Of a stretch of 64,000 nt of DNA, positions 3,401 to 63,000 are shown piece after piece. This stretch comes from Bugula neritina (Eukaryota; Animalia; Bryozoa): NCBI GenBank assembly GCA_964035545.1, contig OZ037767.1, positions 11,046,581 through 11,110,580 of the forward strand, written 5' to 3'. The translations under genes and the position numbers were made by a program. Under the pieces are notes generated by a model. It made no database searches. It saw only the letters and a program-made list of their open reading frames with translations, and had not been told where the DNA came from. How positions within the stretch are numbered: the stretch's first letter is position 1; each line of letters starts with the position of its first letter.

Positions 3401-6400
3401 TTTAAAACTTATTTATAAACAAGTTTAAAATATGTTAATATTTCGTATAAGATATATAGATATAACTGCACACATTTATGGTTCTAGGGATTGTAATCCG
3501 AAATTTTATTTAGTTAATGTTCTACACCAAGAGCCATGCTGGCAGTCTATAGCCCTGAGTGATTAAATGGTGTGTTTTTAGGTTATCTTCCAGGCAATCT
3601 CTTGCATATACACTATATGCACTATATACACTATATACACTATATGCACTATATACACTATATACACTATATGCACTATATGCACTATATACACTATAAT
3701 ATACACTATACACACTATATACACTATATCTACACTATATACACTATATGCACTATATACACTATATACACCATATACACCATATACACTACCTCTATAA
3801 TACAGAATCTTATTGCATCTTATAATGGTCTGTAGGTGGAAGTACATGTGAAGAAGTTGTCAACCCTTGTGGGGAATATGTTGACTTATCATTAACAGAT
3901 GGGGAGAAAAACATCACCTCTCAAAGTATGTTATATTATTGCAGACCTACTATAGCTTGTCATAATATAAATATTACTATATACTTACCTCGAGGGCCAT
4001 ACTTACACTATACATACTGTTAGATCTATTATACTTACCTGAAAAACCCTGTTTATTGCATAAGCCACACCTTAAGAATTATACTTATATTATCTTGTTA
4101 TCAGACTTTGATGGAGTCGGGTCCTTTCTAAGTAATGATATCTGCTACTACTTCATAAAAGGACCGGGTTACATTGAATTGACCTTCACACACTTTGATA
4201 TAAAGTGTGACAACTCCTTAGAAGTCCGATCTTTTCACATTAGTCAACCAGCTCTTGGGTAAGTAGGTTAATGGATGCTAATAGCTTGAAGTCAATGAAA
4301 GTTGTAGAATCTAATTATGACACACCATCTGCTACTTCCATAACTTCACAAGGAAGTTGAAAGGTCACACAGCATGTTTTCAGCTTTGCTATGTGTGTGA
4401 GGGTTGGTTACATTGTTATACATTTTTAGCAGTCTTGGTAAACCAGCATGTCATTGCCAAGAAATCTACATAGTTTGTAACTAATAACCATGCCTAAATT
4501 TACAACAAATATTCTTAGCATAATTTCATGTGGGTTTATAGTCGCCATCCCTGTGAAAACCCCTGTTGGAAAGGGTTTTTTAAGTGTGCCAAGGACTTAT
4601 TTCTGTCGTGGCAAAAAAGAAATCATGACTGAATGCCTTTCCTGGCATCCCTAATGGCCGTTATTAGGATTTGAACCACTGACTTTGTGTTTACTAATTA
4701 GTCAATGCTTTAACCACCAGGTCATCCTGCACCCTACAGCATTATACATTTTGAAGCTTAGTGTAGTATTGCAATACTGAAATCATCCATAAACTATGCC
4801 CTAACTTCAATGAACTAGAGTGAGTATTTTGTAGACTGTGTGGAGACACAGAGCCAGCCCCTGTAAGGACTATGTACTCCCCCACCCCTGGTATGCTCAT
4901 GTTGATATATGATACAACTAAGGCCAATGAAAGGCAGAGAGGATGGTCCCTATCAGCTAAATCACACACTGATGCCTGTCTAGCTGATCCTTGCCATGGT
5001 GCTAAATGTACTCCAGTGTCTGGGTCAGACACCCAGTACAGATGTGACTATCCTGGTGAGTAAAATAGTTTGCAGTATAACCATGTTAATTGTAACATTC
5101 AAGTTACTGAAACACTATATGATAATAATCATGTTTAAAAAATTAGGAAGCAAGCACTGGTGATTTGCTAATATGCACATCTATATTATATTAAATACTG
5201 CTAGTTAGCTGAAAAGCCAAACTACTTATGTGAAGTTGCTTTCTCACAACAGAAAATGTCTCAATAAGCATTGCCAATATTAGTTTAGTTCTTATTTATT
5301 TACCATTACTTTTTATTACCTTCTCATGATTTACTGCCCATAATTGATTAAAACTGGAGTTGCCTTCTTACAGACATATTGACAAATGAGATGTTAGAAA
5401 TTTAGTTTATATGTCAGATATCGTACAGAATGACTATAAACATGATGAAGAAGTTGTTGGTATTCACCACCTCAATTGCTGGAAGATCTTTAGCTAAATT
5501 ATGATTCTACATTACTGCCTCTTCCTATTGGTGCAATCAGCTTTTCTGTTAGCCTAAAGTTATCAAACTAGTCTCAATATGCTTCGGTTTACTTCACACA
5601 CAACTTGCCCGTTGCCTTTGTGTTGCCACATTAGGCAGGATAAACTCTAGAAATTGAGTGTAAAAACCCATTCAAGTGTTGTAACAGAGAAATTTGAAAA
5701 AGTCTGGATTCTTAATGTCAATTTAACTTTTGGTTTGAGAGGGCAATGAAAATAGCAATAACAAAACTTTATTTGCAAGATCTCTCGTCTAAATTACTGA
5801 CTTCTTTTTGCAAATATCCCAGTTACTGCAACAGCCTCTATTTATACAGCCTTTCTACCAGGTTAGATACTCATGACACTTAATTAGATGTTATTGGTAG
5901 ACCACCCCATGCACTGCGAGTTTAACCAAGGAAGACTGGGAGCCTGCAACAGAGTCAAGTTTAACAAATACTACCAGCACGCAGATGACTTTCAGTTAGC
6001 ATGGCAGGTGGCCTCCAACAGCAACCCGCACATGCTCACCAGTACCGATGTGACTCACAGGCTACAGAGAGGAATAGCTAGCATTATACCTCACGACTTC
6101 ACTGGTGAAGTTTATAGTTCCCGGAACAATCTTAATATCTTGATTTGTTGTGACTTATTTGTTATTTGAAATAATTTTTAAGCATTTTTAAAAATATGAA
6201 TTTTACTGGTTTATTAGGTTAAAAACTTATTGTCTGAAAAACAGTATTTATAAAGTTACAATAAGTGGGAGAAGCTTACAATATAAATGGCTACCATATT
6301 ATGACAAAAACTTCTTATAATAATAATCAATTCTAAAATACGGAAATTGTCTTCCCATGACAAAACAAACTGTAATACACAAAATCAAACCATATTCTTA

Positions 6401-28900: not shown

Positions 28901-31900
28901 AGGTTGAGACAACTTCTAATATTGTTTATCCTAATAACCGTTTATTTTAGTAACCTTTCTCATGTTCTTTATTACAACATATTGATTTAGAATCCCATAC
29001 ATTCCAATCATTGAAAGATATTAGCCTACCCTTTCATGTTTTTTATATATCAGGTTCTTCTCGTGTTCTGTAATTTAGAATTTCCAGCCTCTTTGATGCA
29101 TGTGAACTCTATTACCCTGTATTTAGTAGCATTACACAAGTTGTGTTTATACTTCCTGTTATGACTAAAGCAATTAAGTTCTCATAATATATTACAGTAT
29201 ATAGATAATATATTACAGTATATAGATAATATATTACAGTATATAGATAATATATTACAGTGTATAGATAATATATTATAGCATATAGGTAATATATTAT
29301 AGCATATAGATAATATATTATAGCATATAGGTAATATATTACAGCATATAGATAATATATTATAGCATATAGGTAATATATTACAGTATATAGATAATAT
29401 ATTGCGGCATATAGATAATATATTACAGTGTATAAATGACATATTACACATTGTTATATTACAGAGATGTGGTGGACCTCAACAGCGCCAGCCCTACTTA
29501 CAGCGGGAATGTAGCGGTTGGCCCTGGGAGTCACAATACAGCGAGTGACGACTCCATTGGTTCCATATTAGAAATGGCTGTACAGAAATCTCCCTTAATA
29601 TATATAGAGAAAGGGTAGGCACAGATATTGGTGTACTGGTATAGTTTATCAATTATGTAGCATGTGTTTCTTGCAAAAGTTGTTTGAATCATTTAATTTT
29701 ACCGGACATTGTAAGAAATGTGAGTACATACATAAGGGAATTTGTTTTTATCACTGTACTGGTATGCATTGTTCCAGATATTGGACTTTATAATACTTCC
29801 AATAGTAGCACCAGTAGTAGTACTAGTAGTAGCACTATTGCAGATTGCTAGTAGTAGTGGTAATGGTAGTAGTATTAGTGGTACTAGTAGTTGTAGTAGT
29901 GCTAGAAGTGATAGCAGTAGTAACTACTGTCAGTATGAAGCCATGCTATTGAGTGTATATTACAGAGAGGTGTCATACTATTGAATGTCTATTACAGAGA
30001 GGTGTCAAACTATTGAACGTATATTACAGAGAGGTGTCATACTATTGAATGTATATTACAGAGAGGTGTCATACTATTGAATGTATATTACAGAGAGGTG
30101 TCATACTACTGAATGTATGTTACAGAGAGGTGTCATACTATTCAATGTGTATTACAGAGAGGTGTCATACTACTGAATGTATATTACAGAGAGGTGTCAT
30201 ACTATTCAATGTGTATTACAGAGAGGTGTCATACTATTGAATGTATATTACAGAGAGGTGTCAAAAGGTGTTGGCAGATTTAGAGACTTGCTACGAGCAG
30301 TTGGATCCACAACAAGTAAAAACCTCTACAGACTCGTGAGTATATATCATAGTACATGTGTTATTCTCCATAACGATATACTACACTAGTTCATTGGAAA
30401 CAGATTTACTCGTGATTGTTATTTTGTCTTGACTTTTTACATGCTAACAGCTCAAATATTTTGCGTATTTTCAATCCATACAGCATGGGTTGACAACTCC
30501 AGTTGTTCAAGGCTATGTTGGTGGCTGTTGTATGTTTTAAAAGGTATCTCTGAGTTATGTGATGTTTTGTAGACCTTGGCCCGACAGTTAGCCGAGGTGC
30601 TATTGCGGGGCGTATGCTCAGCTACTTATCCCCCCATCGCACTAAAGACAGATAGAAAGAGAGGATCACTAAAGGCTAGGCAGTACAGTGGGCGGGACAT
30701 GTTTGTTCCGTCCAATGAAGAGGAAGAGGCGCTGTTGCTGCTGCTCATCGCAGAGGCAATGGCCAATAGGGAGGCAGTATTGGAGAGGAGGCCTGAACAC
30801 AAGCAGTCTCGACAGCATTCCTATGACAACGCCACTGCAGTGTACGACCTGCTGGCCATAGCCCTGGTGCGCAGGTCCAACTGTGCAATCTTAGCGGAGG
30901 TAGTCACCTGTAATCCCACATTCTACTTAGTATTACTACTGTGCTGCATATGTCCTTTATACTGCATATGTCCCTTGTACTGCATATGTCCCTTGTACTG
31001 TATATGTCCTCTGTACTGTATATGTTCCCTGTACTGCATATGTCCCTGTACTGTATATGTCCCCTGTACTGCATATGTCCCTTGTACTGCATATGTCCCC
31101 TGTACTGCATATGTCACACAGGGGAAAACACCTGACAACATAAGGGCATCTCATCAGAGCACCTGCACATTGCATCCTCTTCTATGCTGCGCTGGCTTGA
31201 AAGTTTTAAGTTTAAACTTTCAATAATTGCTATTAGTTTTATAATAGACTCCAGAGCTGACTGGAAACATTATCAGCAAGTGATCAGAAAATCCAAAGTT
31301 ATTCAAGACATGTTTGTACAAAATTTATCATAACACAAAATTGTTTGAGCATACAACCCTCAAACAGTGTGTAGATAGCTATGATATATATAAATATTTT
31401 AATACTGCATAGATAAAGTGTGTCAGGGATTCTTTAAAGTTTAAGGGTTTGGTTTTGCGCAGTTGAACCTTTGACTACAGCCATTCCATGAGAGCATACA
31501 TATATATGTATAATATATTGAGTGTGTTTACTGTATATTATTTGGTGCTGATGTTTCCACAGGCCCTGGAGAGAGCCATGAAGTTCTCGTATGAAGAGCC
31601 CCACGTCTGGTACCAGTTTGCTCTGTCACTCATAGAAACTGGCAAGGTCTGTACTACGTACACTTGAACTGAGTATGTTAAGCTGCTTGATTCGTCTAAT
31701 CATTTGCTTGTCAAATTTAGACACATTTTAGATATGAGTGAAGATAATTCACAAATCTGCAATTTTAAGAGTTGCGTTTTGTAAAGTTTATGGTCTATAT
31801 ACCCTATACAGCATACAATATATACTGTATAGACTATAGAGTATATACAATGTAGAGTATATACAATGTAGAGTATGTATATATGCAATATATACCATAT

Positions 31901-34900: not shown

Positions 34901-37900
34901 CATATTGGTGGCCGTAAGCTGATCATATTCTGTGTGAGGAAAATGTAAAGTTTTTTAATATCTGACCAACAAGTCATAAAGGTATATTCAAAGTATTTAC
35001 TCTTGCTGTTTTCTTCATAACCAGTGTGAAAGTTCAATATTTGTGTGCAGTATACGTGTGTAGATAATATACGTGTATATAATATACGTGTGTGGATAAT
35101 ATATGTGTGTATAATGTATGCAGTAGATATTATGTATTATAACATAGAACAATATTAACTTGTATGCTATTTGTTGAGTGCTGGCATGTTTGTCCAGTGA
35201 GTGACGTCACGTCATGTAAGTAACTACTATCCCCACTGTCATCTCTTGTATCCAGTGTTAGCTAAATATACTTTTAGATTTCTCTCATGCCGGCTTATTT
35301 GAAAGCAAAGGTAGGGCTCTCGACGCATGACAATATTGTCAATGTAATGGTAGTGCACTAAGCTCAGTGTCATGTGACTGCAGTAGTGTCACATGACTCT
35401 AATGTAGTCTTCCACAATTGTAGTATAATGTCACATGACTAGTCAAATGTCACATCATAACTAGTGCAGTGACTAGTGTAGTGTCACATGACTAGAGTAT
35501 CATGTGACTAGTGTAGTGTCACTTGACTAGCACAATGTCACATAATTAGTGTAGTGTCATGTGACTGTAGTGTCATGTGACTGTAGTGTCATGTGACTGT
35601 AGTGTAGCAGTGTGTAACATGGCTACAGTGTGCTCCTATCCTTTGAATTATTCCCAGTATAGATGTCTCTTTACTAATGAATCACTAAAACAATTGTAGA
35701 GTCAGATATAAACTCAATAAATAGTTCTTGGCTCAAAACATGAAACTTTACTCTTTTGAAAATAATTTGTTATCTTGAATTACTGGATTAGGCCCTAGTG
35801 GAGTTGGAAGAACCTACTCATTTGATTCATGAACTGTTATGATATTTTGTGCAGACATGTTTGTAGTACACATACTTGCTGATCTTACACTGTGTCATGC
35901 CGTATTCTCATTTATTTCAAAATGAAAGTGACAACGCAACCAAATAAGTTTTTATAAGCAGCATTTCACAAATTACCGTAAAAATGATACTAATCAGTAA
36001 ATCGGCCTACCTGTAATAGCTTGATTAACTATAGCCTCACGACCATACTTTTACTAGTTTCATAGAGGGTGGTTGTGGAGGCCCTTTTACTGTTTTAGAC
36101 TGTGAAGTCACATACTATGTAACTGATTTCTACTAACCCCAAACCCAACTAACAGTACAGTAGGCACTGCACGCTTTGCTTCTAATATAGCAAATATACT
36201 TTTCACTTATAAACAATTAACCATCTTTTAGTTGGAATATACCTTTAGATATACTAACGTTACGTGACTTAATAATTCGGTCTGCTCTCTCTTTACAGTA
36301 TTATATGAACACTGATGTAGAAATTATCTGTTTTCACATGATACTAAACTTAGTTGGTGGCCATTGTTATACAAACCTATATTCTCTGCAGGATCAGTGA
36401 GAGAGTCGGTAGCTGCGTCTAGAGTGGAGAAAGCTCTGTCAGAAGTTGCCTCCTCCTACCAGAGCTCTGTGTGGCCCAGACCTGGTCCTCAGTACAGCTG
36501 GTCTGTGCAGGCTCAGATCTGGCTGCATTTAGGTGAGCATCTAGTCAGCTTCTTAACCTATCTTCCTGCGTGATCTTTGTGTGGTCTCAAACCTTCCCGT
36601 GTGATCTTTGTGTGGTCTCAAACCTTCCTGTGTGATCTTTGTGTGGTCTCAAACCTTCCTGTGTGATCTTTGTGTGGTCTCAAACCTTCCTGTGTGATCT
36701 TTGTGTGGTCTTAAACCTTCCTGAGTGATCTTTGTGTGGTCTCAAACCTTCCTGTGTGATCTTTGTGTGGTCTCAAATCTTCCTGTGTGATCTTTGTGTG
36801 GTCTCAAACCTTCTTGTTTTGTCTCTCATCTTAACTTAATATTATAAGTACAATATCTAAATTATAAAATCTAATGACTCACTTTTCAACAGCCAATCAA
36901 ATGCAGCATACAGCCAGCCAATCAATCGTAAGCACTCACACATTATCGTTGACTCAAAAATGGTTTCTGCATTGTGTGTAATTTTTAAATTCATGCTAAT
37001 GTAATTTTGGCCATATCTAAAATATTTCTCCATCTCGTGTAAAAGTGTTGATTATTTTGAACATACAGTGTTGACTGCTAGCAGTAAATAGTGTTGGAAG
37101 TATGAACATTTTAACCAAGTTTATTTACTCCCTTCAGCTGAAATTTACCTCGAGGCATCAAAGACTAAAGAAGCTCACGACTGCGTAGATGAAGCTATGA
37201 CTATATGTCCACTATCCCACCTAGCTAGTTATATGGTAGGTAATATCCCACCTAACTAGCTATATGGTAAGTAATATCTCACCTAGCCAGTTATATGGTA
37301 GGTAATATCCCACCTAGCTAGTTATATGGTAGGTAATATCCCACCTAGCCAGTTATATGGTAGGTAATACCCTACCTAGCTAGTTATATGGTAGGTAATA
37401 TCCCACCTAGCTAGTGATATGGTAGGTAATACCCCACCTAGCTAGTTATATGGTAATCATTACATATCTACATAAGAATTGTTAGTATTTCTAGACTAGT
37501 ATACACCACTGTACACTGTGTAGTATATGAATTTTGGATTTTAGAAAGGGCGTGTGCTGGAAGTCGAACAGAAGTATTCGGAAGCCAAATCGTGTTTTGA
37601 GGCTGCCCTCTGTATCAACCCGTATCATGTGAAGAGCATGGCCTATTTGGTATGTCTGTATGCCCAGTCTAAGTTATATAATATGTATGGCATGTAGAAT
37701 TTAATACAAAGTGTAGGTGTGTGTGTTGTATGTGTGCGCACATGCACGCTTGTAGTACCAGATCTAGGTCACTATTGCTACAAAAGACAGTTGATATAGT
37801 CAATACTGTAGCACTGGGTTATAAAGATAGTCATATATGAGTATATATATATATATGCTACTTGAAAACTTTCTAGAGCCATGTCTTTAATAACTGACGA

Positions 37901-38910
37901 ATGTTGTCTTTCACCAGGGCAAGACCTTGCATTCCATGGGACATTCTAAACTGGCTGAGAAGATGTTGCGTGATGCTGTCAACGTCAACCCGACAGCGCA
38001 TCAGGCCTGGTAAGTTGCTGAGATGCCAGTCTACTATTTTACTATTATCTGATAGTGTTTATGCTTCACTATTTGGTGTTTATTGGTTTACATTTCATGT
38101 TGGTGTTTAGCTATAAGTGCAGGGTAGAAGTGCCGTCATTTGCAGCTCTAGTTGATACAATGATTTATAGGGTTGTTAATTAACTATAAGGTTTACATCC
38201 TTCTAGTTGGTCTGAACTGCACAACACCCAACATTTTACAACCATGTATGAGAAAATAACTCCTCAGGGTGCTGCAGCTATTTATATTAATCCAAATTAT
38301 ATTATCTAAATTATAAGCAACATATTTATTGTATTAGAGCTGTTACTCACTTCAGTGTAGGCACCTATAATAATTTATATGTCCAATGCAACTGGTTATT
38401 GTAAACTTATGGATGTATTAATACGGCTATTATGCTGCAACATAAAGTAAGTATGGAACTTACAATTGACCTAAAAATTAATATCAAACCGAATAGTCTA
38501 TTCTATGCGATGCAGATGTATACACTGAGCATGCTCGTACTGTAATGTATACACTGAGCATGCTCGTACTGTAATGTATACACTGAGCATGCTCGTACTG
38601 TAATGTATACACTGAGCCTGCTTGTTGCTGTGATGTATGCACTGAGCATGCTCGTTGCTGTGATGTATGCACTGAGCATGCTCGTTGCTGTGATGTATGC
38701 ACTGAGCATGCTTGTTGCTGTGATTTTCAGTTGAAATGTTACTTTCTCTTATCTCAGCCTACTATTCCTGTCTGCTTTAGGAAAGAGTTGGGGGTGGTGC
38801 TGGAGGCCCTCAAAGAGTTTGATACAGCTTCAGATTGTCTCATTACAGCTATCAATTTAGAACGTTCTACACCTGTTATTCCATTTTCAAACCTCTTCCG
38901 AATGAGTTGA
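25974..38910 (+). CDS. TTC7: Tetratricopeptide repeat protein 7 (PI4KA scaffold), about 19 exons
   Basis: Starts MANKGKNYKIEAEIEKHRAHQNWDKA; conserved blocks GVGRFRDLLRAV, LARQLAEVLLRG, EEEALLLLLIAEAMANREAVL, VYDLLAIALVRR, LERAMKFSYEEPHVWYQFALSL, VAASRVEKALSEVASS, QAQIWLHLAE, LAEKMLRDAVNVNPTAHQAW; ends STPVIPFSNLFRMS-TGA at 38910. Confidence 0.93.
29185..29464 (+). repeat. 21-bp tandem repeat containing atattacag, abutting the TTC7 acceptor at 29464
   Basis: Unit taatatattacagtatataga, about 12 copies. Confidence 0.88.
29947..30263 (+). repeat. 32-bp tandem repeat spanning the TTC7 acceptor at 30253, 10 copies
   Basis: Unit attacag/AGAGGTGTCAtactattgaatgtat; AG at 29965 through 30253 in steps of 32. 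Confidence 0.93.
30938..31115. repeat. About 20-bp intronic minisatellite gtactgcatatgtcccc
   Basis: Tandem array starting about 40 bp after the donor at 30900. Confidence 0.88.
32400..32610 (+). repeat. Interspersed repeat fragment, related copy at about 57097-57330
   Basis: ttcacgattttc.gtca.a.attcaatttgg.cg.gtt.aaa and ataactccttg.a.acat.g.tattta.tta shared between both sites. Confidence 0.6.
33722..33870. repeat. 30-bp intronic minisatellite, 5 copies
   Basis: gtgacaagtgcttgctatgagagtgtttta units. Confidence 0.88.
34808..34910. repeat. 24-bp intronic minisatellite, about 4 copies
   Basis: ccatattggtgtctagagagggta units. Confidence 0.88.
36556..36816. repeat. 31-bp intronic minisatellite, about 8 copies
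   Basis: ccttcctgtgtgatctttgtgtggtctcaaa units starting about 25 bp after the donor at 36533. Confidence 0.92.
37214..37456 (+). repeat. 31-bp tandem repeat spanning the TTC7 donor at 37236, about 8 copies
   Basis: Unit ATCCCACCTAGCTAGTTATATG/gtaggtaat. Confidence 0.93.
38515..38725. repeat. 29-30-bp intronic minisatellite, about 7 copies
   Basis: atgtatacactgagcatgctcgtactgta units. Confidence 0.9.
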
Positions 38911-39385
38911 TAACCGTGACACTTGCAGCTATGATTTCTAAATATTGTAGTCATACAAATGATCTTAGTTACATATTATGTTTTGTTATGTTATATTTAT
39001 ATTTCAATAAATAGAATATTATTTATTTCTTTTCACTCATGCAGACACAATATTCTACTTTATATTAAATGTTCCTGGTTGTAGATTAGTATAATGTATA
39101 ATATGGTATAGTATAAGTATAATTAGCATATTGGGTATTTTCTCAAATGTATTACTTTGGTTATAATATATTTAAAGTTGTTTTTATTTTTTATATAATT
39201 AAATGATGTTTACTTTCAATTTTAGTCGACTATTACTATCAGACTATTGTTTATTAGGTTGAAGGAAATTTGTTATTATGTTACTACAAAATTGCTGCAT
39301 TGTTATTGCTGACTTAAAATAGTACCTGTATTTATTTTTGTGATGTAGCGGTTAATGTTTGTGTTCTAAAAAATAATCACCATAT

Positions 39386-39737
39386 TGTAGTAATTTGTGC
39401 AATTACTGAGCGTGAGTTATTTACTTGCGTATAGTTAGCTGGTTATTCTGTTATCAATTACTAGGGTAGCTGTCGAGTAATTATATTTATTATCCACAAT
39501 AAAGCATAAACCAAACATCACATCAAATTATCCTATACAAGAGTCAACTACTAACACATGTTACTACTACAAGCCTCCGCTTACAACAACGTGATATAAT
39601 CTTAATAACCCGGGAAGTGTCACGTGACTCGGAAGCATATCTTCCGGAGCTGCTAATTGGTTGCTACATAAGAGTCTAAGTATTCCAAGAATAGGGAGAG
39701 GGCGATTCCTGTATTTGTACTTGCACTACTCACTACA
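39386..39737 (-). repeat. 3' LTR (352 bp)
   Basis: Near-identical copy of 44293-44645; preceded on the minus strand by a polypurine tract. Confidence 0.95.
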
Positions 39738-39748
39738 CCGTCCCCCCC
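39738..39748 (-). promoter_or_regulatory. Polypurine tract
   Basis: Minus strand GGGGGGGACGG immediately before the 3' LTR. Confidence 0.8.
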
Positions 39749-40028
39749 AGCAGAAAGCCCTACTTTCTGATAACACAATAAAAAAAACATAATGAAAAAC
39801 CATACAATAATCCAAAAAGGAAATATTCATAAGTAAACCCACAAAGAGTAAGAAAAGAAATAGTTAAACACGACAACGTTTACATTAGAAGACAACAGGG
39901 TGATCGATCACACACATCTAGTCAGCTATTAAGAGAGAGGGTGCTTACCAGCACGCGGGCCAATGTCGGAGCGCTCGTCACATCCTAAACGAGCTATAGC
40001 TCAACGAAGGTGCCTACCCCAGGCATTC

Positions 40029-41076
40029 TCATTGGTTGGACTCTGCTTCTTGTAGCGACCGTGCTCTGTGTCGAGCCTGTCGGGCCCGTAGCCGCCTCTT
40101 CAGTCGTCCCACTGAGTCCTTCAACTGGTATAGACCTGTCGTCGTATCCAGCAAGTCAGGGGCAAGTTGTGTGAACTCGGCTTGCAGTCTTAGAAGCCGC
40201 TCTTCTACGTTAGCCAGCTGGCTAGGTCTTGGTGGGGTTATGGGGGTCTCCGTTATACGGGATATGGTTGTTTCTTCTACTTCTGGGGTGTTGCTAGGGT
40301 TGACGGGGGTAGGAGGTGGGCCCTGAACCATAGGGGACTTATGGCGGGCAGATAGTAACAGTACGTGAAACCCGGACGTTAGTGCGGCCAGGGTAATAGC
40401 CTTCCTGATGACTGGCTTGATGGCATCCAGGTATAGGGGGAAACTGTCTTCATCAACAGTGTGGTTCTCTCCGGCGAAGCAGCTTAGCTTATGTACTGTC
40501 ACGGGATACGGGTAGACGTCGTGGAACCCGCAGGGACAGAAGTGGAGTAGGAAATGGGCATCTACATGTAAACGCAAGGAGCGGTGCGACGGGCACTCCT
40601 CAAAGCAGACCTGGCAGGTTCGGTGTGGTCCACTGGGTCCCCAGGCTTCTTCAATTCTCCTCTCTGTCGTGGGTGACACCCAACGGTGTCGTCGGCGGAG
40701 TACTACTGGTATGCCATTCTCCATTACAGGCTCTTCTTCCATAGACAGAGAGGTTGGCTGGTCCCGTGACCGGGAGGTGGTCACTCGAGTGTGATCTGAA
40801 AGAGTAGCAGTGTTAAAGATTATACACTGAGACACCGTCGGTGTGTACAGCCTGACCGGTACTCTGTTCAGTTACACTCGTGAGATTCAGGCTAATGAAT
40901 AGTTGATGGAGAACACACTCGCTATGACAGATTATTTAAAATCAAAGTCGACGTGTATTCCCACCACTGTTTATCATTATCGAATCTCCAGCTAGCTAGT
41001 GTAGCTGACTGATGCAGTCTAGTTATCGTACCAAAAACATAATTAACTCACCCTTCGATCCAGAATAGTAAGACAT
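40029..41076 (-). CDS. Retrotransposon accessory ORF3, predicted two exons (41076-41052, 40795-40029), about 263 aa, C2H2-like zinc finger plus C-terminal coiled coil
   Basis: CAAAATG start, MSYYSGSK, phase-1 donor G/GTGAGT (41051), acceptor ctctttcag (40796) in frame with ORF 40029-40835; CQVC-x12-H-x3-H then CPCG...H...C; heptad-like LANVEERLLRLQAEF...LKDSVGRLKRRL. Confidence 0.7.
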
Positions 41077-41099
41077 TTTGGAATGAAAGTGGTATCTGA

Positions 41100-43358
41100 T
41101 TACTGTTTACTGGCACGTCTACTCTCGACTGCATCAACATAGGAAAAGACCGGACAGCGTGGTTGTGAAACGTGACTAGGGCTTTTCACTTCCAGCGGAT
41201 GAATCTCGTGTGAGATTCCGCCGAGGCAAAAGTTGAGATTCTCGTGGTGATCACAACTCCCACGGCTCTTTGCCTGTTTTCCCATGCGAGGCCTCTCTAG
41301 ACTTTTGTTACTGCCGCTTATACCGCGGTCACGTACACAGTCTCTGAGACACGCTGGAAGTTGCCTAGTGTGTGGTGCTGGTCCTATGTTGGCATCTCCT
41401 TGCGGAGCCCCTCCCACGGGGGGTTTTTGCACTTCCGGACCTGTTTCTGGTTCCGGAAGTGGTGATGATGGCAGGCTTGACGTTGGGGGCGGTGGGCGCA
41501 CTTTCAAGGACGGAAGTGGCCTTTCTCGCCTCGCCAAGTCTTCCTGACGTGTCATGGAGGTGTTTCCGGCCAGGTTGACAGTCTCCGCCTGCCGAGACCT
41601 TCTCGCACAATGCGTCTGCCGCCCCGCTTCACCAGGGAGACGGCTATGCTTGTTGGTCTGGCAGACTTTGCACCGTCTCACTCTGCGTCGGATATCCCGT
41701 TCCATGTTAGGCCAGTACCACCGGAGTTGTAACTTGGTGACCACCCCTTGGACTCCTCCGTGAGTCTCCTCGTGAGTGTCTTGTATCAACTTCCGGCGGA
41801 TGGCAACTGGGCAGACAACCCTCTTCCTGGCTGGCTGTCTGCTGTTGGTGGCCAAGGTCATGGTTAGCAGACCATCTGGCCCGACCCGCAGAGAGCTCCA
41901 ACGTTGACAGTACAGCCGTAACTCGGCGCATCCCTGTCGCCGTTGTGTACTACTGGGTCGTCGCCCCTCCTGTTTCGCTCGGTACACGTCGGCTACCACC
42001 CCAGGAAGGCATTCCTGGAGCTTCGGCAGCTCCCTAACGTTACCAGCCCATACAGGTTTGGCGCGGAGGCTCTGGGCAGCCTCCGGGGGCGTGTCAGCCC
42101 TCTGTTGAAGTGGCTGAGCAGGGGCGGTCCTCGCCGCCCGTGGTACCTCACGGCAGCCTGCTCTATTTAGGCGGGCTCCGTGGTTTGTGTGGCTGAACGC
42201 CTCACTGTACCCATGTGGCAACCTAGCCATAGCCTGGCGCTTCCCGTTGCCTGTGCAGCCACGCGTCCCTGGAGGAGGGGAGGCGTGGGTTGGGACGGTC
42301 CTCCGCCCTCGAGACGGGCTCTGCTGAGGACCTTCTGTCGTAGCTCCCGACGACGGCCCAATGGCTTCCTCCTGGACAGGATGGAAGCGACCCAGCATGG
42401 ATCTGGGTGATAGGTCTACTGTCTCTGAGAAGGGGTTGACACACTGCACTGAGATCTCTCCTTGCCTCGTGAGCCGGCTAAAACTACGGGCAAGTTGGAC
42501 TCTCGAGTGCGTACTTTCGACAACTCCCAACTTAGAGGTTTGGCCACCGTCTACCTTGCAGCGGACGGTAGCCCGGGAGTGGCCTGGTATAGTACAGCTC
42601 CGTACTACCTGCACTGCTCCCGCTAGAGGACGACCAAACTTATCGACACAAGCGAGCTCCTTGTCGCCCATGATTATCGCAGATTTACTGAAATCGATGC
42701 GACAACCGTGTCGTTGTAAGAATGGCATCCCGAGGATAGCATCCTCGTTGAGCTGCCCGACGATAAACGTCTCTTGGATGGCCTGGTCACGGACGTAACC
42801 AGTTAGCTCAATAATGCCGTAGAAGGGAATGCACGACCCGTCTGCCAAGGTGCCATGATCCCCCTCGTACGGTGCCAACCTGTCCTTGACCTTAGCGCTG
42901 AGGGTGTCAAAGAACTGACGGCTAAGGAGGTTGGTGGTGCAGCCGGAGTCCAGGAGGAAGTTGGCAGGCTTGCCGGCTAACTTCCCTGGCAGGAAGTAGC
43001 TACTTCCGTGCGGCTGCAATTGAGTGTGCCGTGGTTGCACCTCCCTCGCTGTGGGTCGAGGGGTCCACGGTTGGCGGCGACTATTGACCAGCTGCCGAGG
43101 TTGGGGCGGTACGCCTTGCGGCGCTTGTACCGTTTCCCTCGCAGGCTCTGTGGTCAACCGTCTGCCGGCTCCGTGTTGGTGCCGGAGTGGCGTAGAGGAC
43201 CCAGGCGGCGAGTGGCTTGAGCCTACTTGCCGCGGGGGTCGCCACTTCACAGCATCTCCGCGCGGCGCCCAGCGGGGCGACAGACGCGCGGGCCTCCCTG
43301 GGTGATTTACAGACGGCCCGCAGGAGGTGGGAACATCTGCGGGCCGGGGTAGTTTAAC
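41100..43358 (-). CDS. pol: Internally deleted Pol: aspartic protease, RT N-terminal stub, integrase HHCC zinc-binding domain and tail; in the -1 frame relative to gag
   Basis: FLLDSGCTTNLL and AILGMPFL protease motifs; H-x3-H-GG...RWYWPNM..DIRR.VRRCKVCQ integrase zinc-binding domain; no YxDD, RNase H or DDE core visible in the 786-codon open frame. Confidence 0.85.
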   Translation of the reverse strand, partial: VKLPRPADVPTSCGPSVNHPGRPARLSPRWAPRGDAVKWRPPRQVGSSHSPPGSSTPLRHQHGAGRRLTTEPARETVQAPQGVPPQPRQLVNSRRQPWTPRPTAREVQPRHTQLQPHGSSYFLPGKLAGKPANFLLDSGCTTNLLSRQFFDTLSAKVKDRLAPYEGDHGTLADGSCIPFYGIIELTGYVRDQAIQETFIVGQLNEDAILGMPFLQRHGCRIDFSKSAIIMGDKELACVDKFGRPLAGAVQVVRSCTIPGHSRATVRCKVDGGQTSKLGVVESTHSRVQLARSFSRLTRQGEISVQCVNPFSETVDLSPRSMLGRFHPVQEEAIGPSSGATTEGPQQSPSRGRRTVPTHASPPPGTRGCTGNGKRQAMARLPHGYSEAFSHTNHGARLNRAGCREVPRAARTAPAQPLQQRADTPPEAAQSLRAKPVWAGNVRELPKLQECLPGVVADVYRAKQEGRRPSSTQRRQGCAELRLYCQRWSSLRVGPDGLLTMTLATNSRQPARKRVVCPVAIRRKLIQDTHEETHGGVQGVVTKLQLRWYWPNMERDIRRRVRRCKVCQTNKHSRLPGEAGRQTHCARRSRQAETVNLAGNTSMTRQEDLARRERPLPSLKVRPPPPTSSLPSSPLPEPETGPEVQKPPVGGAPQGDANIGPAPHTRQLPACLRDCVRDRGISGSNKSLERPRMGKQAKSRGSCDHHENLNFCLGGISHEIHPLEVKSPSHVSQPRCPVFSYVDAVESRRASKQ

Positions 43359-44257
43359 CCTGGTGAGAGTTGAGGGCAGTTTCTCTGGAAATGTCCTGGC
43401 CTTCCGCATTCCCAGCAGAAGTGGTGCCCCATGCCTGGTGATTGTACCTGCGGCCCGCAAGGCTCACGGGCAGTATCTACCTGGCTTGGGGAGGCTAATG
43501 TGGTGACCAGTTTATCTAGCATGTCAGTCATCTGTGAGATTTTTGACGCTAGTGACATCTGGTTCACACTAGCCACCGCGGAGGGTTCCGCATTTAATTC
43601 GGTGTGAGCAGTAGAGTGCTCCGTGGTCACCTGGCGGGAGGCCACGCGGTTGCGGTGCATATGAGTCGCCAAGAGATAGGCTTCTCCCACCGCAAGTGCA
43701 TCTTCGACTGTGGTGACTCCCCTCGCTTGGAGTTGATGGTGGAGCCCCAAGTCGTTGATGGACTGCACGAAGGCATCATAGGTATACCTCTCACGGTGTA
43801 CCGGAGGCAGATCGCGGAATGCAATCTGCGCTAATGGGTACACCGTGGCAGCGTGCTCTTCTAGTGACGTGTGAGGATCACGCCGCATCCTCTGTAGACG
43901 GGTCCGCGCATCTATGGGAGAGATGCCAAAACGGGCCCGCAGGGAAGCAAAGATTCCGTCTATGTCAGGTCCCGCTCCGTACGGCTTAGCTTTGCCCGTC
44001 AGCGCCATCCTGAGCTTGAGCAGCGCCACCCTTGGCGGCCACTCTGAAATCTCCATCACATCTTGGAATATTTGGATAAACTGCTCCACTGCTTCCTCGC
44101 CTGCGAAGGTGGGCACCTTCATCCGGTATCTGTCTTCACCATACTCTCTAAGAATTCTCACTTCTTCATCTAACACCACTGGTTCCACAGGTATATCAAC
44201 ATTATCTCTCTCACCTTCATTCAGTGGAATGGGTAGCTCCGTGCCGTCTTCTGCCAT
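43307..44257 (-). CDS. gag: Gag (capsid plus CCHC nucleocapsid knuckle)
   Basis: First ATG at 44257 (MAEDG...); KVPTFAGEE..EQF...W...L...LTGKA capsid pattern; CWECGRPGHFQRNC = CX2CX4HX4C. Confidence 0.9.
   Translation of the reverse strand: MAEDGTELPIPLNEGERDNVDIPVEPVVLDEEVRILREYGEDRYRMKVPTFAGEEAVEQFIQIFQDVMEISEWPPRVALLKLRMALTGKAKPYGAGPDIDGIFASLRARFGISPIDARTRLQRMRRDPHTSLEEHAATVYPLAQIAFRDLPPVHRERYTYDAFVQSINDLGLHHQLQARGVTTVEDALAVGEAYLLATHMHRNRVASRQVTTEHSTAHTELNAEPSAVASVNQMSLASKISQMTDMLDKLVTTLASPSQVDTAREPCGPQVQSPGMGHHFCWECGRPGHFQRNCPQLSPGLNYPGPQMFPPPAGRL
43314..43358 (-). promoter_or_regulatory. -1 programmed ribosomal frameshift signal
   Basis: G TTA AAC heptamer in gag frame (43358-43352), 5-nt spacer, perfect 10-bp stem CGGCCCGCAG/CTGCGGGCCG with 13-nt loop, inside the gag/pol overlap. 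Confidence 0.78.
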
Positions 44258-44273
44258 GACTGCTATACGCAAG

Positions 44274-44291
44274 ATCCCACCGCTGCCACCA
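44274..44291 (-). promoter_or_regulatory. Primer-binding site for tRNA-Leu (AAG/TAG type)
   Basis: Minus strand TGGTGGCAGCGGTGGGAT, 1 nt inside the 5' LTR; complementary to the conserved animal tRNA-Leu 3' end ATCCCACCGCTGCCA-CCA. Confidence 0.88.
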
Positions 44292-44292
44292 C

Positions 44293-44645
44293 TGTAGTAA
44301 TTTGTGCAATTACTGAGCGTGAGTTATTTACTTGCGTATAGTTAGCTGGTTATTCTGTTATCAATTACTAGGGTAGCTGTCGAGTAATTATATTTATTAT
44401 CCACAATAAAGCATAAACCAAACATCACATCAAATTATCCTATACAAGAGTCAACTACTAACACATGTTACTACTACAAGCCTCCGCTTACAACAACGTG
44501 ATATAATCTTAATAACCCCGGGAAGTGTCACGTGACTCGGAAGCATATCTTCCGGAGCTGCTAATTGGTTGCTACATAAGAGTCTAAGTATTCCAAGAAT
44601 AGGGAGAGGGCGATTCCTGTATTTGTACTTGCACTACTCACTACA
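44293..44645 (-). repeat. 5' LTR (353 bp)
   Basis: Matches 39386-39737 except one extra C (taaccccggg vs taacccggg); adjacent to the PBS. Confidence 0.95.
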
Positions 44646-45511
44646 ATATACTTTGTTTTGTATCACGATGAAAAATTGTTTTAAATCAATAATACTAATT
44701 GTTGTTATACAATGTAGATCCAGGAAACATATTTTTTTTATAGAACAAGTTCTTAGCAACTGGTGGTATGTTAAGAAGTTACATTATATAGGCTACCATA
44801 TACCTGAAAGTTGTACATTGAACCCAAATTTTAAGCTACAAAGCAAAAAAAATTATGGGTCATCAAATGTCAGTCTATATCTTATGGATTATAATTCTTT
44901 TCATTGCAATCTCCCATCCATTAGTTTAGAGTACTTGCTACAACATTCAATTTGTTGAATTTTATGTTTCACACGCAATTCACCTATGTAAGTCCAAACT
45001 GCTGCACTTGGTCACCCCCAACCCAAAGCTGTTTATAGAACAAGTCATTGCAAGAAAGCATAGCGTTTTAGTTGTTGGGATATAGAAGTGAAGAAGGAGA
45101 CGTAGTAGTGAGACTTCCGAGATGAAAAAACGTGAGGTCCCAGCATAAGGTGAAGGACGTAGTAATGAAAGCGGTCTCCTTATCGCAACGAATACCAGTA
45201 CTGAACTAACTAATAGTAATACTACAAATACCTATAGTTAAACTTATAGTAATAGGAATTTATATTCGTAGTATTATTATTCAATTACATTTAACTAATC
45301 TTTCAATAAGATTATATTACCAGTGGCTATATTTTCTAATAGCCGTGTTACGTTTAGATTTACTGTCACACTGTTACCTGTAAGTGTAAGTGTGAGACTG
45401 AGCGCGACTGTCTGACTGTGACTGCAATTTCAATTTGCAGTTAGTGAGTTACTAATAACTAATAGTAATACGTACTATTAGTAATACTATCAATTTCGAA
45501 TTAAATTTAAA

Positions 45512-57000: not shown

Positions 57001-60000
57001 CATGTGTGCAGAGCGGGGCGCAACACTTGAACACCCAACAATTTAACATAAAAGCTACAGGACTGCTGCTAAAGCCAAAATATAAAGTTGCGTTTATACC
57101 TTCACGATTTTCGGTCAAAATTTCAATTTGGCCGGGTTGAAATTTCTCCGAGTTGCATTGCATTGTAAAAGCCACTCGTTGAAATTTTTGTACTGTGATA
57201 ACTCAATCGGCCAATTTTAGAATAGGAGTAATAACTCCTTGCAAACATCGTTATTTAGTTATTACTTTGGCGATTAGACAACGTACTTATACGGTTATAA
57301 TTATATAGCCTACGCCTTCTCAATTATCGCTTTTATGCTTTCCGCTTCACTAATTCACGACGTTTACAAAGGGCATCAAATAGCTATTATGCGAGTCAAA
57401 TTTCAATTTCAGAAAGTGAGCAACCGCATCAATATGATTTCAACGAGTTTCAGTTTGACTATAAAGGGGTACCCGGACAAGCATTATTAACTTAAACTCG
57501 GTACTTTTTACAGCAGAGGTATAAACGCAACTTAAGAGCTGCCAGAAAATATTTGAAAATCAGACTTCCAAAACATGATTTCAGTCTAGTTGATTACTTT
57601 AAAATAACCGGTCATCAACAATAATGTCTACAAAATTACACCTATATAAAAATGTTGTGCTTTCAATAGCCTTAGAGATGAACATCTAATGAAAAGCTTG
57701 CGGTTAGCATTCACAGCAACTACAAGTAATGTGTATGCAGAGTGATTCTCCCAGCCAACCTCTAAACTTGTTAAAATAGTTATAACTTTAGACTAAGTTC
57801 CTAGGACAGTCAGTGTAAGAAGGAAGACAGCTACCCGTGCCGTAACACACTAATGTGGATTAGAAAAGTTACCGTGTGAGAGAGAACCTGGAGATGATAA
57901 AATGTATATAATTAAATCAAACTACACTTTCACAGAAGTACAGCATTGATTAGTCTACAAAATCGGAGTTACGACTCCAACGAAGATATTTTAATGCGGC
58001 TACAGCTCCCTGGGAGTTGTCTTATTAATATTGACAAAAATGCATAACTTCATGCAGTCACCATAAACACCTGTCTAACTATCAAGTGAGTAGATAAATA
58101 GGTCTAGTAAGGCAGCAGCAGTAGAAAATCTCAATACCCTAATTTCTTTTATTATCTATAAATTTTTGTTTGGGGGCATTACTGCACCCACCTCACCATA
58201 CTGGAAGGAAGCTAGTTCCCAACAACTTGTTACACACATGGCTCCCGGAGTGAAGTACTAAAGAGAGGAGGCTGTGACTCGACACGTATATAACTTACGT
58301 GGTCAAACAGGAACTCATTTCTAATCTCTTCATTCTCTTCTGGATCGGTTGTGAGACACCATTCAGGGTCAGCCATGTCAGAGGTCACCGGTTTAATAAT
58401 ACTGTCAGGGGTTTCAGCAAGTGGTGCAGAGGAGGCAGCTATAATATAGTACAATACACTATAGTACAGTGTACACTACAGCGCAGTGTGCACTACAGTA
58501 CAGTGTACACTACAGCGCAGTGTGCACTACAGTACAGTGTACACTACAGCACAATGTGCACTACAGTACAGTGTACACTACAGTACAGTGTGCACTACAA
58601 TACAGTGTGCACTACAGTACAGTGTATACTACAGTACAGTGTACACTACAGTGCAGTGTACACTACAGCGCAGTGTACACTACAGTACAGTGTATACTAC
58701 AATACAGTGTGCACTACAGTGCAGTACAATACACTACAGCACAGTGCGCACTACAATACAGCTCCCTTCCCTGCTCTAAAACTTATGATACATTTTCTTG
58801 GAAAATCCAATTGGATAAGTGAAAATTGCATTGTTTTTAATCGTAAACTCAAGGTTTTCAACTCGACATGTATGCCACTTGATCTAACTGAAGGTTGCAT
58901 TCCACACAGGTCAGTACCAGTTCCATTACATTCTATACTACAATATAACGTATACTATTGACCACCTGCTGATTGTACAACATACACTACCTGATAACTT
59001 TTCCCGGAGTCGTCTCCCACCAGCATCCTGTTCTCCCTGAACCTCCTTAGATTTGAACATGACGTCGTAACAGTCGTCACACACTCTCACACTCCTCCCC
59101 CCTACTGGAGCCGTACGCGGCGAGCAGTTTGCACACACGACTCTGCCACAGCGACGGCAATGATGTCTCCGGTTAAACTGCAGCATAAAAGGTTGACCAA
59201 TTGGAAGAACGGAGTTTAGAGGTCTTGCACAAGCTGGTGTCAGTTATCATTGTGATGTCAGATGATAGTTATAACACAGAGACCAACCACAAATATGTCT
59301 ACCACAGGTTACTCTATTAAAGCTACAATTTTAGCTGCACACTTCACATATATTGGATGTGAAAATTTTCTTGTCTTGACCAGTGAAATTGGCACCCAAA
59401 ATGAAGCTAATAAGAGACTGCAACACAAAAACCGGTTTTCTAATTTTAACAACATTAAAATGAGGAAAATTTGATGCCAGTTTTACATGTTGAAAGTGAT
59501 TGAGTAAATCAGGAAAAATATCATAATAAAGCAGTTTCTTATCATAAAGAAAAAAAATTGCAGACAAAACATGTGAGCTGTAGACATATTAAAACGCAGA
59601 TATACCTTTCTTGAATTTAAAACTACTTGTCAGAAAATTTAACATATTTATATCAGCTAATGAAATGATCTATAAGATGAGACGAGACATGCCAGCATAC
59701 TGACCATGCTGAAAGGGTCCAGCTGACAGAGCATACACCTGTCTGTGTGGTCATCCGGGACCCACTCATGTCTGGCCGGTGCTCGCTCAGGAATCACAAA
59801 CTTTCTACTCTTCTCTGGGAGAGACGAGGAAAGATTTAATGAAGAACTGCTGGAGAGAGTTAAAAGATTGCCAGGAGCAGTGGTGGTGCGATTTAGCCGA
59901 GATGACGGGCTCTGAAACATACCCCCGCATTGTTTCACAATATAGACTGGAATATGAGTGCTATGGTGCTTACAGACAGGAAATTTACTGCCATGTAAAG

Positions 60001-63000
60001 AGTAAGCGCTATCAGTGACTGGTGTGAAGTAGAGCGCCATCTATCCCATAAATATGCCAAAGTCTGTGAAGTTATTTCTATGATAAATTTTCGCCACATA
60101 AAACCATAAACTTTTAGAGAACTTGTAATATACTATGTAGAATCATTTAGCTTAAGCTGTATTTATATTTTACTAAAATCATAATAGACTAAACAACACA
60201 ATTACAGAACACTACCTACGCTACCAAATTTTATGCTAGCACTGTATACTTGTAAAGTTAGCACTATATACCTGTGAGGTTAGCACTATACACCTGTGAG
60301 GTTAGCATTGTACACCTGTGAGGTTAGCACTATATACCTGTGAGGTTAGCACTATATACCTGTGAGGTTAGCACTGTATACCTGTGAGGTTAGCACTGTA
60401 TACCTGTGAGGTTAGCACTATATACCTGTGAGGTTAGCACTATATACCTGCGAGGTTAGCACTATATACCTGTGAGGTTAGCACTATATACCTGTGAGGT
60501 TAGCACTATATACCTGCGAGGTTAGCACTATATACCTGTGAGGTTAGCACTATATACCTGTGAGGTTAGCACTATATACCTGTGAGGTTAGCACTATACA
60601 CCTGTGAGGTTAGCACTATATACCTGTGAGGTTAGCACTGTATACCTGTGAAGCAGAAGGAGACGATCTCCGCAGTGAAGAACCAAGCAGAGCTTTCTGT
60701 AGAGGACTTATACTGGAAGAAGAGTCAGTCTTAGCCAAAGTTCTTGCATGCTGGGGAATTAATGCGGACATCTTACCACTGCCCCCTAAAACAAAAACAA
60801 GAAACTGCAAAAAACACAAATCCTTCTATGGTTAAAAAGCTCACTTTGTTTATTCAATTCAAGTATTCGTGAATAACTTGTGCAGGTCTAATCTATTCGA
60901 CCAGAGCTAGTTGCTCAGTATAAACTCATGACTGTATATTCACAGATCTACTGTAACAGGATTTTAACCTGCTGACAATTACCTATTGGAAGTTGTCTGG
61001 ATTTACGTCTGGGAAGGGTGTTACTAATATTCTATTTAGTATACAGCTTTATACTTTGGCATCATAGATTCAATTTCATGAGCACACAACTCTTTCTCAA
61101 AAGGAGTAAATTTCAAGCTTTCAACTAACATAAAATAATGCCAAGCATCAGCAAATCTTCAGCTAGTAAAAGCTTTAGCTCTCTGAAAATTCCATACTGA
61201 AAAAAAAATTGGTTAAATTTATCACTAGCCTAAATATTGAGAAAAAGCAAAGCGTGGAAAATATCCTATCCTTCAACAGTTACAGTGTATAATTTACAAG
61301 TCATGACCTTAGTTGTGAATATTGTGTTTATAAAACCGATAGCATAGTAACCTTTTAGCATATATAAATCTAAAACACATCGTGATACAAGTTATAGATA
61401 GCACTCTATTCTAGATCATACAAAGGTCATACAAACCGAGTGCATGTGGTGACAGACTCAGGATAGGGAAATGAACGGCCTTCTCAGCGTAGGAAACTAG
61501 CAGCTCGTCAACTTCCTGTGTAAAGTTGAACGTGTCGGAGGACGAGTCGCGCAGAAAGCCGACTACTTGCTGTGCCCATGTGATCTTCGCATTCATTAGC
61601 AGTTGTTCAAACATGAGCAGGGGAGTGAATATGAGGGGCTTGTACAGAGCGTGACTGTCAGCATCAATACACTGGAGCATCTGTGAGAACGTGGGCAATT
61701 TATCAGAGTATATAATAATATATTACACTATATGAAAGTACATTACAGTATATAACAATATATAATAATAATACCTTACAGCAAAGGATAAAATAACCAG
61801 AGGAGATAGTGCAACTGTACGCTTACACTAGTGGTCATATAGTATATACAGTAACTTACCTGTACTACTGATCATATGATATATACAGTAAATACCTATA
61901 CTAGTGATCATATAGTATATGCAGTAACTTACCTGTACACCTATACTAGTGATCATATGGTATATACAGTAACTTACCTGCACACCAATACTAGTGATCA
62001 TATAATATATACAGTAACTTACCTGTACACCAATAGTCCCAAGCTGTACTTTCTCCCTCTGCCTGTCACCAAGGCAACCAGCCATTTGGTTGTTCATGAA
62101 GTTGAGTAGGAGGGACATGCTGCTGGGTTTACTCAGCTGACTCAACACGTCAATACACAGCGTGAAGCTGTCATTAAATTCCGCCTCCAAAGATCTCTTC
62201 AGAACTGCCGTGACATCTCCGCTCTCTCCCTCTCCATCTAAACTGCTCACTAGATACTGTTTGTACACCATCTATGAAATATAACCACTTATTAGACACC
62301 ATCTATGAAACATAACTCTAATCACTATACATAATCTATGAAATATAACTGCTTTTAACAAGTCATTTCAATTTATTGCACTGCATAATCTTCACGTATA
62401 ACATGAATGTTTTTGAAATCATATATATTATAGAAGGCTAATATGCGTATAATGTGTATGATATGCGTATAAAATGCATATATGTAATATGCACATAATA
62501 TGTGTATAGCATGCTTATAAGATGGGTATAAGATGCCTACAATGTGTATAATTAGTATGTGTATACTGTGTATAATATGCATATAAAATGTTGATATCAT
62601 GAGTATAATATGCATATTGTATGCATATAAGATGCATATGGTATTTTTGCCACCTTTCTCCACCATTTTTTGATCTGGTGGCGGAATAAGCATATGGTAT
62701 GTGTACATAACAATATATAATATATAAAATGTATAAAATTTGAAGAGAAGTAACTCACTGTTCTGAGATCACCCGGAATGTTCTTTGTAAAGTCGGCTAG
62801 TTTCAAGGCAAACTTGTATTCGTGAGCATCGAAAAGGAGGTGGAAGACAGAATTTGGGTCGCTGACGAGTAACTCCGCCACATGCTGCCAGTCAGACGCC
62901 AGAATCTTTATCACCTAAAGTTGCAAGATAAACTTAGAACTTCTGTTGTTGAAAAATTCAATTGGAAATAAAACTACGCCAGGCAAAAAGTATTTTACAA

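Follow-up and report, generated by a model that had tools for sequence, protein, structure and literature searches.

A young Ty3/Gypsy element of Bugula neritina that keeps gag and protease and probably borrows reverse transcriptase and integrase from related elements

The window analysed in this work is a 64,000-nucleotide stretch of the genome of the bryozoan Bugula neritina (GenBank assembly GCA_964035545.1, contig OZ037767.1, positions 11,046,581 to 11,110,580), and it contains, as a single copy, a long terminal repeat (LTR) retrotransposon of 5,260 bp on the minus strand (39386-44645; Table 1), which is probably a young copy of a semi-autonomous Ty3/Gypsy lineage that borrows reverse transcriptase (RT) and integrase (IN) from related elements. 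Its placement in Ty3/Gypsy follows from LTR ends of the TG...CA type with a short target-site duplication (TSD), a primer-binding site (PBS) beside the 5′ LTR, a polypurine tract (PPT) beside the 3′ LTR and the pol domain order of its RT-bearing relatives (protease, RT, RNase H, IN). An initial annotation, made by reading the letters alone, had described the TSD, PBS and PPT as intact and all open reading frames (ORFs) as open, and this was borne out, with ATAT on both sides of the element and gag, pol and ORF3 uninterrupted; its statement that the LTRs differ by a single C agrees with the end-to-end alignment of the pair, wherein 0 mismatches and 1 gap were found, a G-run on the strand of the element being 3 long in one LTR and 4 in the other, with the extra G in the 5′ LTR. 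By our estimate, the chance of a 4-base ATAT match is about 0.005 at the local base composition. The PBS presumably resembles the 3′ end of a tRNA-Leu; neither the window nor eight loci yielded a tRNA gene to set beside it, and an Rfam search of the window gave no match.

The element stands out from its surroundings in composition, with a G+C content of 56% in its interior vs 36% in the host DNA outside 39386-44645, and with a CpG observed/expected ratio of 0.78 vs 0.41 in the flanks. The host ratio suggests germline CpG methylation, and the difference between the two fits a lineage that has not long been resident in a CpG-depleting genome. LTRs alike but for 1 indel, a TSD still present and undepleted CpG together mark a recent transposition of the element in the deleted form described below.

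Along pol the segments follow each other as protease, RT stub, pre-integrase region, integrase N-terminal HHCC domain, IN-core stub and tail, and no Pfam match to RVT, RNase H or rve was found at E<1 in pol or at E<=1 in ten ORFs of other frames; the RT, RNase H and integrase core of its own by which an element is autonomous are thus absent from the window copy, and the view that these enzymes are missing, and not displaced into another frame, stands. The two stubs, which had been read as the N-terminus of an RT and the start of an integrase core, are true homologues of these parts. Gag would be made from its own ORF, and a Gag-Pol remnant with an active-looking protease and the HHCC finger would be produced through a -1 frameshift, for which a candidate slip site and a putative stimulatory hairpin are listed in Table 1, the stem of the hairpin being conserved in 5 deleted lineages, for the most part without change or via G-U changes. 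A zinc-binding coiled-coil protein would also be encoded by the element, as the product of ORF3.

Table 1. Features of the LTR element, with positions in the window
Feature	Position	Strand	Description
TSD ATAT, upstream copy	44646-44649	.	flanks element
5′ LTR	44293-44645	-	353 nt, TGTAG...ACTACA
PBS TGGTGGCAGCGGTGGGAT	44274-44291	-	TGG-initiated 18-mer, 1 nt past 5′ LTR
gag	43307-44257	-	316 aa from ATG (44257); CCHC zinc knuckle near C-terminus; Pfam zf-CCHC E 5.6e-5
pol ORF	41100-43460	-	786 codons; -1 frame relative to gag; gag overlap 153 nt
Candidate -1 frameshift site GGUUAAAC	43352-43359	-	putative, in gag/pol overlap; motif kept in most copies
GC-rich hairpin, putative frameshift stimulator	43314-43346	-	10-bp; 5-nt spacer past candidate slip site; minimum free energy -29.8 kcal/mol, z -2.3
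Aspartic protease domain	42711-42989	-	pol aa 158-250 (Pfam); DSG at aa 171
Deletion junction 1	42114/42113	-	pol aa 449/450; RT + RNase H missing
Integrase N-terminal HHCC zinc-binding domain	41643-41810	-	pol aa 551-606; H563, H567, C597, C600; Integrase_H2C2 E 9.9e-15
Deletion junction 2	41547/41546	-	pol aa 638/639; integrase core + C-terminal domain missing
ORF3	40029-40835	-	third long ORF; 40029-40742 from first ATG, 237 aa; not in the initial annotation
Conserved 3′ block ending in PPT GGGGGGGACGG	39738-39773	-	nearly identical in RT-bearing relative L003
PPT, G-rich	39738-39748	-	abuts 3′ LTR
3′ LTR	39386-39737	-	352 nt, TGTAG...ACTACA
TSD ATAT, downstream copy	39382-39385	.	flanks element

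The missing parts of pol were placed by a nucleotide multiple alignment with the RT-bearing relatives (L003/L004, L005 and L011 in our numbering of loci). These relatives share with the window element the gag, protease, post-protease, pre-integrase/HHCC, tail, ORF3 and PPT blocks, and between the shared blocks they carry DNA for RVT_1/RT_RNaseH and for rve/SH3_Tf2-1; the Pfam order of pol in L003/L004 and L011 is protease, RVT_1, RT_RNaseH, Integrase_H2C2, rve and SH3_Tf2-1, and the window copy likewise has its protease before the HHCC domain. At junction 1 a run of 1,248 alignment columns is missing from all deleted copies, the window subfamily being without about 96 nt more, and at junction 2 a run of 879 columns is missing, with a boundary that is identical in every deleted copy. 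Both deletions are multiples of three. The two large frame-preserving losses that the initial annotation had postulated are thus mapped against actual relatives, and the comparison shows that the ancestor was a gag-pol-ORF3 Gypsy element from which RT/RNase H and the integrase core were lost through two in-frame deletions. A short homology, GAGAAGG..GGAGGT, is found in the RT-bearing copies at both edges of the first deletion, which suggests that template switching may have produced it.

The deleted structure recurs. Both junctions are identical in L001/L012, L002, L006, L007/L008 and L009, whose nucleotide identity to the window copy is 99% for L001/L012, 77-80% for L002, L007/L008 and L009, and 70-72% for L006; the junctions are thus common to at least five independent copies that differ by 20-30%. 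The close relatives all come from the JGI samples 3300002729 and 3300003318, with scaffolds labelled AY690838, a Bugula neritina mitochondrial genome accession, and one of these metagenome contigs, L001, matches the window element at 98.8% identity. Of 38 proteins of the family that were detected with pol, 11 distinct predicted ones, all from scaffolds with this label, are of the deleted type across junction 1 (five of them across junction 2 as well), and another 11 are RT-bearing. In trees, the deleted copies all lie on one side of a single branch, with support of 100/100 in the protease to post-protease segment and 98/98 in the pre-integrase to HHCC segment, and they form two subfamilies, namely the window group, with a long stem (0.13-0.16 changes/site) and tiny tips, and group B (L002, L006, L007 and L009). 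The deleted copy L007, which is older, carries two LTRs of its own, about 95% identical in aligned columns and 85.6% by BLAST counting gaps, and is flanked by a 4-bp ATAA duplication; the deleted form has therefore integrated repeatedly, on separate occasions. Because the junctions are common to many diverged copies and proteins, they characterise a lineage and not a one-off, in agreement with what had been supposed at the outset, and the finding of a single copy with unique deletions, which would have spoken for the opposite, was not made. The deleted form went on multiplying and divided into at least two subfamilies, about 25% diverged.

Metagenome contigs can be chimeric or LTR-collapsed, which concerns L001 and L012 here. 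Upstream of the 5′ LTR of L001 (L001:1-151) lies an inverted 3′-end fragment of another copy (element positions 4784-4933), which may stem either from a nested insertion in head-to-head orientation or from a chimeric assembly. A search of a further metagenome contig collection, evidently without Bugula samples, with the pol alignment returned no relative.

Selection on the coding regions was estimated as the ratio of non-synonymous to synonymous divergence (dN/dS) by pairwise Nei-Gojobori comparison, in the reading frame of the window element, of that element with L002, L007 and L009. The lowest values within gag and pol are those of the protease (0.14-0.19, P<1e-6) and gag (0.21-0.22, P<1e-17), followed by the pre-integrase (0.29-0.34, P<5e-4) and post-protease (0.29-0.35, significant) segments; the HHCC domain gave 0.33-0.52 (P 0.012-0.14) and the RT stub 0.48-0.71 (P 0.035-0.34, falling under 0.05 in one comparison of three), and neither the pre-protease linker (0.59-0.82) nor the IN stub with the tail (0.71-0.82) differs from 1. 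The ratios show that gag and protease, the neighbouring segments and ORF3 are under purifying selection. The initial annotation had proposed a lineage selected to make its own capsid and protease, and had named neutral dN/dS in the protease and HHCC regions as a result that would count against it; gag at about 0.21 and the clearly constrained protease support the proposal, and for the HHCC domain the answer is borderline. The motifs follow the same line, in that the protease DSG is kept in all copies, CCHC in the deleted copies, and the four HHCC zinc ligands in all deleted-type rows compared (window, L001, L002, L006, L007 and L009; proteins P0001, P0002, P0006, P0010 and P0015).

The stubs, said to have drifted without stops, are indeed open, with dN/dS of about 0.5-0.8 that is largely indistinguishable from neutral. 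Of five pol indels between the window element and L002, four are multiples of 3. The simulated chance of finding no stop, with all divergence placed on one lineage, is about 0.02 for the pre-protease linker, 0.25-0.31 for the RT stub and 0.04 for the tail, and becomes roughly the square root of those values if divergence is split over both lineages. That near-neutral segments are still open fits linkers that are read through to reach the protease and HHCC domain; the RT stub, IN stub and C-terminal tail would accordingly be drifting linkers kept open.

The strongest constraint in the element falls on ORF3, with dN of 0.17-0.20, saturated synonymous sites and a dN/dS of about 0.08. The protein consists of an N-terminal zinc-binding domain (C-x2-C-x12-H-x3-H, then C-x-C...H...C), a P-rich linker and a long C-terminal helix, the C-terminus being predicted as one long helix in a first ORF3 model. 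That first model, built from close homologues only, reached a predicted local distance difference test score (pLDDT) of 63; in its place we used a deeper alignment, from which the N-domain was modelled with pLDDT 93 and a predicted template modelling score (pTM) of 0.87; the conserved putative ligands are C37, C40, H53 and H57, and C63, C65 and H78. No Pfam match was obtained for ORF3, and a Foldseek search of the N-domain against PDB and BFVD gave none below E 0.4, the best being the tandem C2H2 fingers of Kaiso at a template modelling score of 0.30. A word-index search detected 126 homologues, mostly full length, and a profile search placed the N-domain (about 125 aa, two putative zinc sites) in some 100 further unnamed proteins of 150-600 aa, ten of which, as distant homologues, gave only weak C2H2 matches against Pfam. 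As ORF3 is present in the RT-bearing relatives, it is ancestral to the family. Our guess is that it might be a dimeric nucleic-acid-binding accessory protein. The reading of the element as an env-bearing errantivirus was rejected, as ORF3 has no Pfam or Foldseek match to an envelope protein; no signal-peptide or transmembrane predictor was run.

Another Gypsy family of Bugula (L013:2715-8080; protease, RVT_1 and rve) encodes, directly past its integrase, a distant homologue of ORF3 with 355 aa, so that an ORF3-like gene is a recurrent accessory of Gypsy elements in Bugula, and ORF3 represents an uncharacterised protein family tied to Gypsy elements in bryozoans. Within the deleted lineage, third-position identity between the window element and group B is 65-78% along gag/pol vs 46-48% in ORF3, and divergence is higher in the 3′ untranslated part as well; the 3′ part of the window subfamily thus seems to have a different, deeper, recombinant origin.

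The cis-acting signals connect the deleted copies with RT-bearing ones. The PBS of the window element is also present in L001, L002, L006 (with one C-to-T change), L007 and the RT-bearing L011, and in expanded form in L003, and both L003 and L011 have the PBS core and PPT block common to the deleted copies, together with LTR ends, TGT(A/G)(A/G)TG...A(C/T)(A/T)ACA, that match those of the deleted copies apart from one or two bases. In L003, a tandemly expanded GGCAGCAGT-like unit comes after the PBS (L003:4916-4965). Beyond the ends, the L003 LTR is unrelated, and the L011 LTR shares 80-84% identity with the LTRs of group B and only 64% with the window LTR. In the tail/ORF3 and HHCC segments the distance of L011 from group B equals that among the group B members themselves (dS about 0.23), but in gag and protease it is saturated; its grouping with group B in the 3′ part only argues for recombination and hence for co-packaging, and a family that recombines is what is expected if deleted and autonomous RNAs are packaged together. 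A helper lineage for group B is therefore plausible from these relationships, and none of the sampled relatives is an RT-bearing helper close to the window subfamily in LTR or gag. For the autonomous partner with the same LTR and PBS that the initial annotation had recommended looking for, the outcome is that L003 and L011 share the PBS core, the PPT block and, closely, the LTR ends, and that the relatives sampled include no intact partner and none with an LTR close to that of the window element. Because RT and IN are absent from a copy that has near-identical LTRs and a target duplication, we propose mobilisation in trans, wherein the RNA of the element would be reverse-transcribed and integrated by the RT and IN of related autonomous elements. 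Constrained and intact gag and protease, a recurrent deleted structure and shared PBS, PPT and LTR termini are together the attributes of a semi-autonomous GAG-Pro element.

Several other explanations of the locus have to be weighed. That the window copy is a one-off, namely a recent autonomous insertion that suffered two private deletions during or after insertion, would suit its being a single copy in 64 kb, but it is refuted by the occurrence of both junctions in L001/L012, L002, L006, L007/L008 and L009 and in the 11 proteins, at 55-99% identity, and we regard it as extremely improbable. Hardly more credible is an origin of the copy by segmental duplication or assembly error rather than by retrotransposition: LTR-collapsed assemblies do occur among the metagenome contigs of the family, but the copy has a complete LTR at each end and lies between 4-bp duplicates of its AT-rich target, its flanks are unrelated to those of other copies (the window flanks are not present in the related contigs compared), and its CpG is undepleted within a CpG-depleted host. 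Better supported, though still quite unlikely, is the explanation that the deleted lineage is real and its constraint is borrowed, in which case recombination with autonomous elements would refresh gag, protease and ORF3, and the lineage's own proteins would be immaterial. The mosaic nature of L011 and the low third-position identity of the window ORF3 to group B agree with such exchange; however, the deleted copies stay on one side of a well-supported branch in both pol segments used for the trees, no sampled RT-bearing copy is nearer in gag or protease to either deleted subfamily than the subfamilies are to each other, and in each of the two pol ORFs compared the frame runs open through the junctions, a property that autonomous donors could not supply.

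The retained HHCC domain leaves more room for disagreement. It is possible, if on balance somewhat unlikely, that HHCC and the pre-integrase region survive through an accident of the breakpoints or for a cis-acting RNA or DNA signal, the protein domain having no role; the borderline dN/dS of the HHCC domain agrees with this, as does the short homology at the edges of the first deletion, by which the breakpoints may be mechanistic accidents, whereas the significant dN/dS of the pre-integrase region, with a dearth of non-synonymous relative to synonymous change, indicates constraint at the protein level, and the four zinc ligands are kept in the deleted-type rows, old decayed ones included. A more far-reaching idea, which we put forward only tentatively and hold to be rather doubtful, is that the isolated HHCC domain is kept for a function of its own, which extends the suggestion of the initial annotation that it could recruit or antagonise helper integrase: brought in by the Gag-Pol remnant of the parasite itself, it could join helper integrase multimers via N-terminal-domain contacts, and thereby either draw helper IN (and RT) into particles made of parasite Gag or poison helper integration, and together with ORF3, a zinc-binding fold not described before that several Bugula Gypsy families have downstream of pol, it would make the element a retroelement hyperparasite with dedicated hijacking proteins, not a passive deletion derivative.

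Certain observations weigh against a semi-autonomous lineage mobilised in trans. No intact autonomous helper was found, as all RT-bearing relatives sampled have a broken pol, the range of the protein search having excluded a pol of about 1,500 aa, and these relatives are distant from the window subfamily, with 46-64% LTR identity and a gag dS >1.2. The window subfamily itself is known only from the window and two metagenome contigs, one of them LTR-collapsed, and the frameshift hairpin shows no two-sided compensatory change in its stem across the 5 deleted lineages. Taken singly, two of the three comparisons show no significant constraint on HHCC; the Nei-Gojobori estimates are rough, and saturated in ORF3; and exchange with autonomous elements could account for part of the low dN/dS, in a family that clearly recombines. 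With all of these taken into account, the semi-autonomous lineage is the reading that we consider likely.

Internally deleted LTR elements of animals that are mobilised in trans, such as the mouse IAP I-delta-1 and ETn/MusD, can be more numerous than the full-length elements related to them. ETn lacks coding capacity, and the deletion in IAP I-delta-1 fuses gag to pol with the downstream enzymes kept; neither of them is known to keep only a protease and an HHCC finger. Elements of the LARD and TRIM types resemble the Bugula element in needing helper RT and IN and in sharing terminal cis signals with the helper, but assignment to them was rejected, since they lack coding capacity and the Bugula element has ORFs of 316, 786 and 237 codons under constraint. 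The reading as a domesticated host gene was likewise rejected.

The concept of GAG-Pro-only semi-autonomous Gypsy families is already known from wheat, wherein RLG_Sabrina_SA and RLG_WHAM carry GAG and protease only, without RT and INT, and are termed semi-autonomous partners of RLG_Wilma (PMC9744471); these high-copy elements are thought to supply Gag and to borrow enzymes, and their subfamilies diversify beside the autonomous family (PMC9744471). The Bugula element is like them in keeping gag and protease, in lacking RT and the integrase core and in having diversified into subfamilies; unlike these plant elements, it lives in an animal and shows two clean in-frame losses inside a continuous pol ORF, and its integrase HHCC finger and conserved downstream accessory ORF are not described for Sabrina_SA/WHAM (PMC9744471). 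In the centromeric pair of Triticeae, RLG_Quinta keeps GAG and an unknown domain and shares its PBS, LTR termini and PPT with RLG_Cereba (PMC11302176). The same sharing of PBS, LTR ends and PPT was used here for the Bugula family; however, Quinta has no protease or integrase remnant, and its autonomous partner is intact and identified. Barley BARE2, which parasitises BARE1, lacks a functional gag and keeps the enzymes (PMC9744471), so that it depends on a relative for one function as the Bugula element does, but with the opposite division of labour.

Semi-autonomous systems have been documented mainly in large plant genomes, and the Bugula family offers a clean animal example of the split of labour among retroelements, in which Gag and protease are kept and the enzymes are out-sourced. 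The sequences show that this arrangement has stayed stable over a long diversification. This invertebrate case unites deletions that preserve the frame, an integrase zinc finger that was kept and an accessory gene under strong constraint with no recognised fold, and it could provide a tractable system for determining which parts of Gag-Pol a retrotransposon parasite really needs.

Elsewhere in the window, an 853-codon open frame on the plus strand (9939-12500) encodes about 15 thrombospondin type 1 repeats (TSP_1, E 1.8e-136); a host gene presumably carries it as a single giant exon. No Pfam match was obtained for the open frames at 14072-14968 (+), 58299-58961 (+) and 61828-62271 (-), which are 147-298 codons long. 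The open frame at 30576-31226 (+) matches the C-terminal part of the TTC7 N-terminal domain (E 1.3e-33); the LTR element lies about 8 kb downstream of it on the opposite strand, and possibly within or next to the TTC7 gene. Three minisatellite arrays of 30-31 bp units (36562-36817, 37213-37455 and 38515-38724), with 7-8 copies each and 91-95% matches, are all located less than 3 kb from the insertion site.

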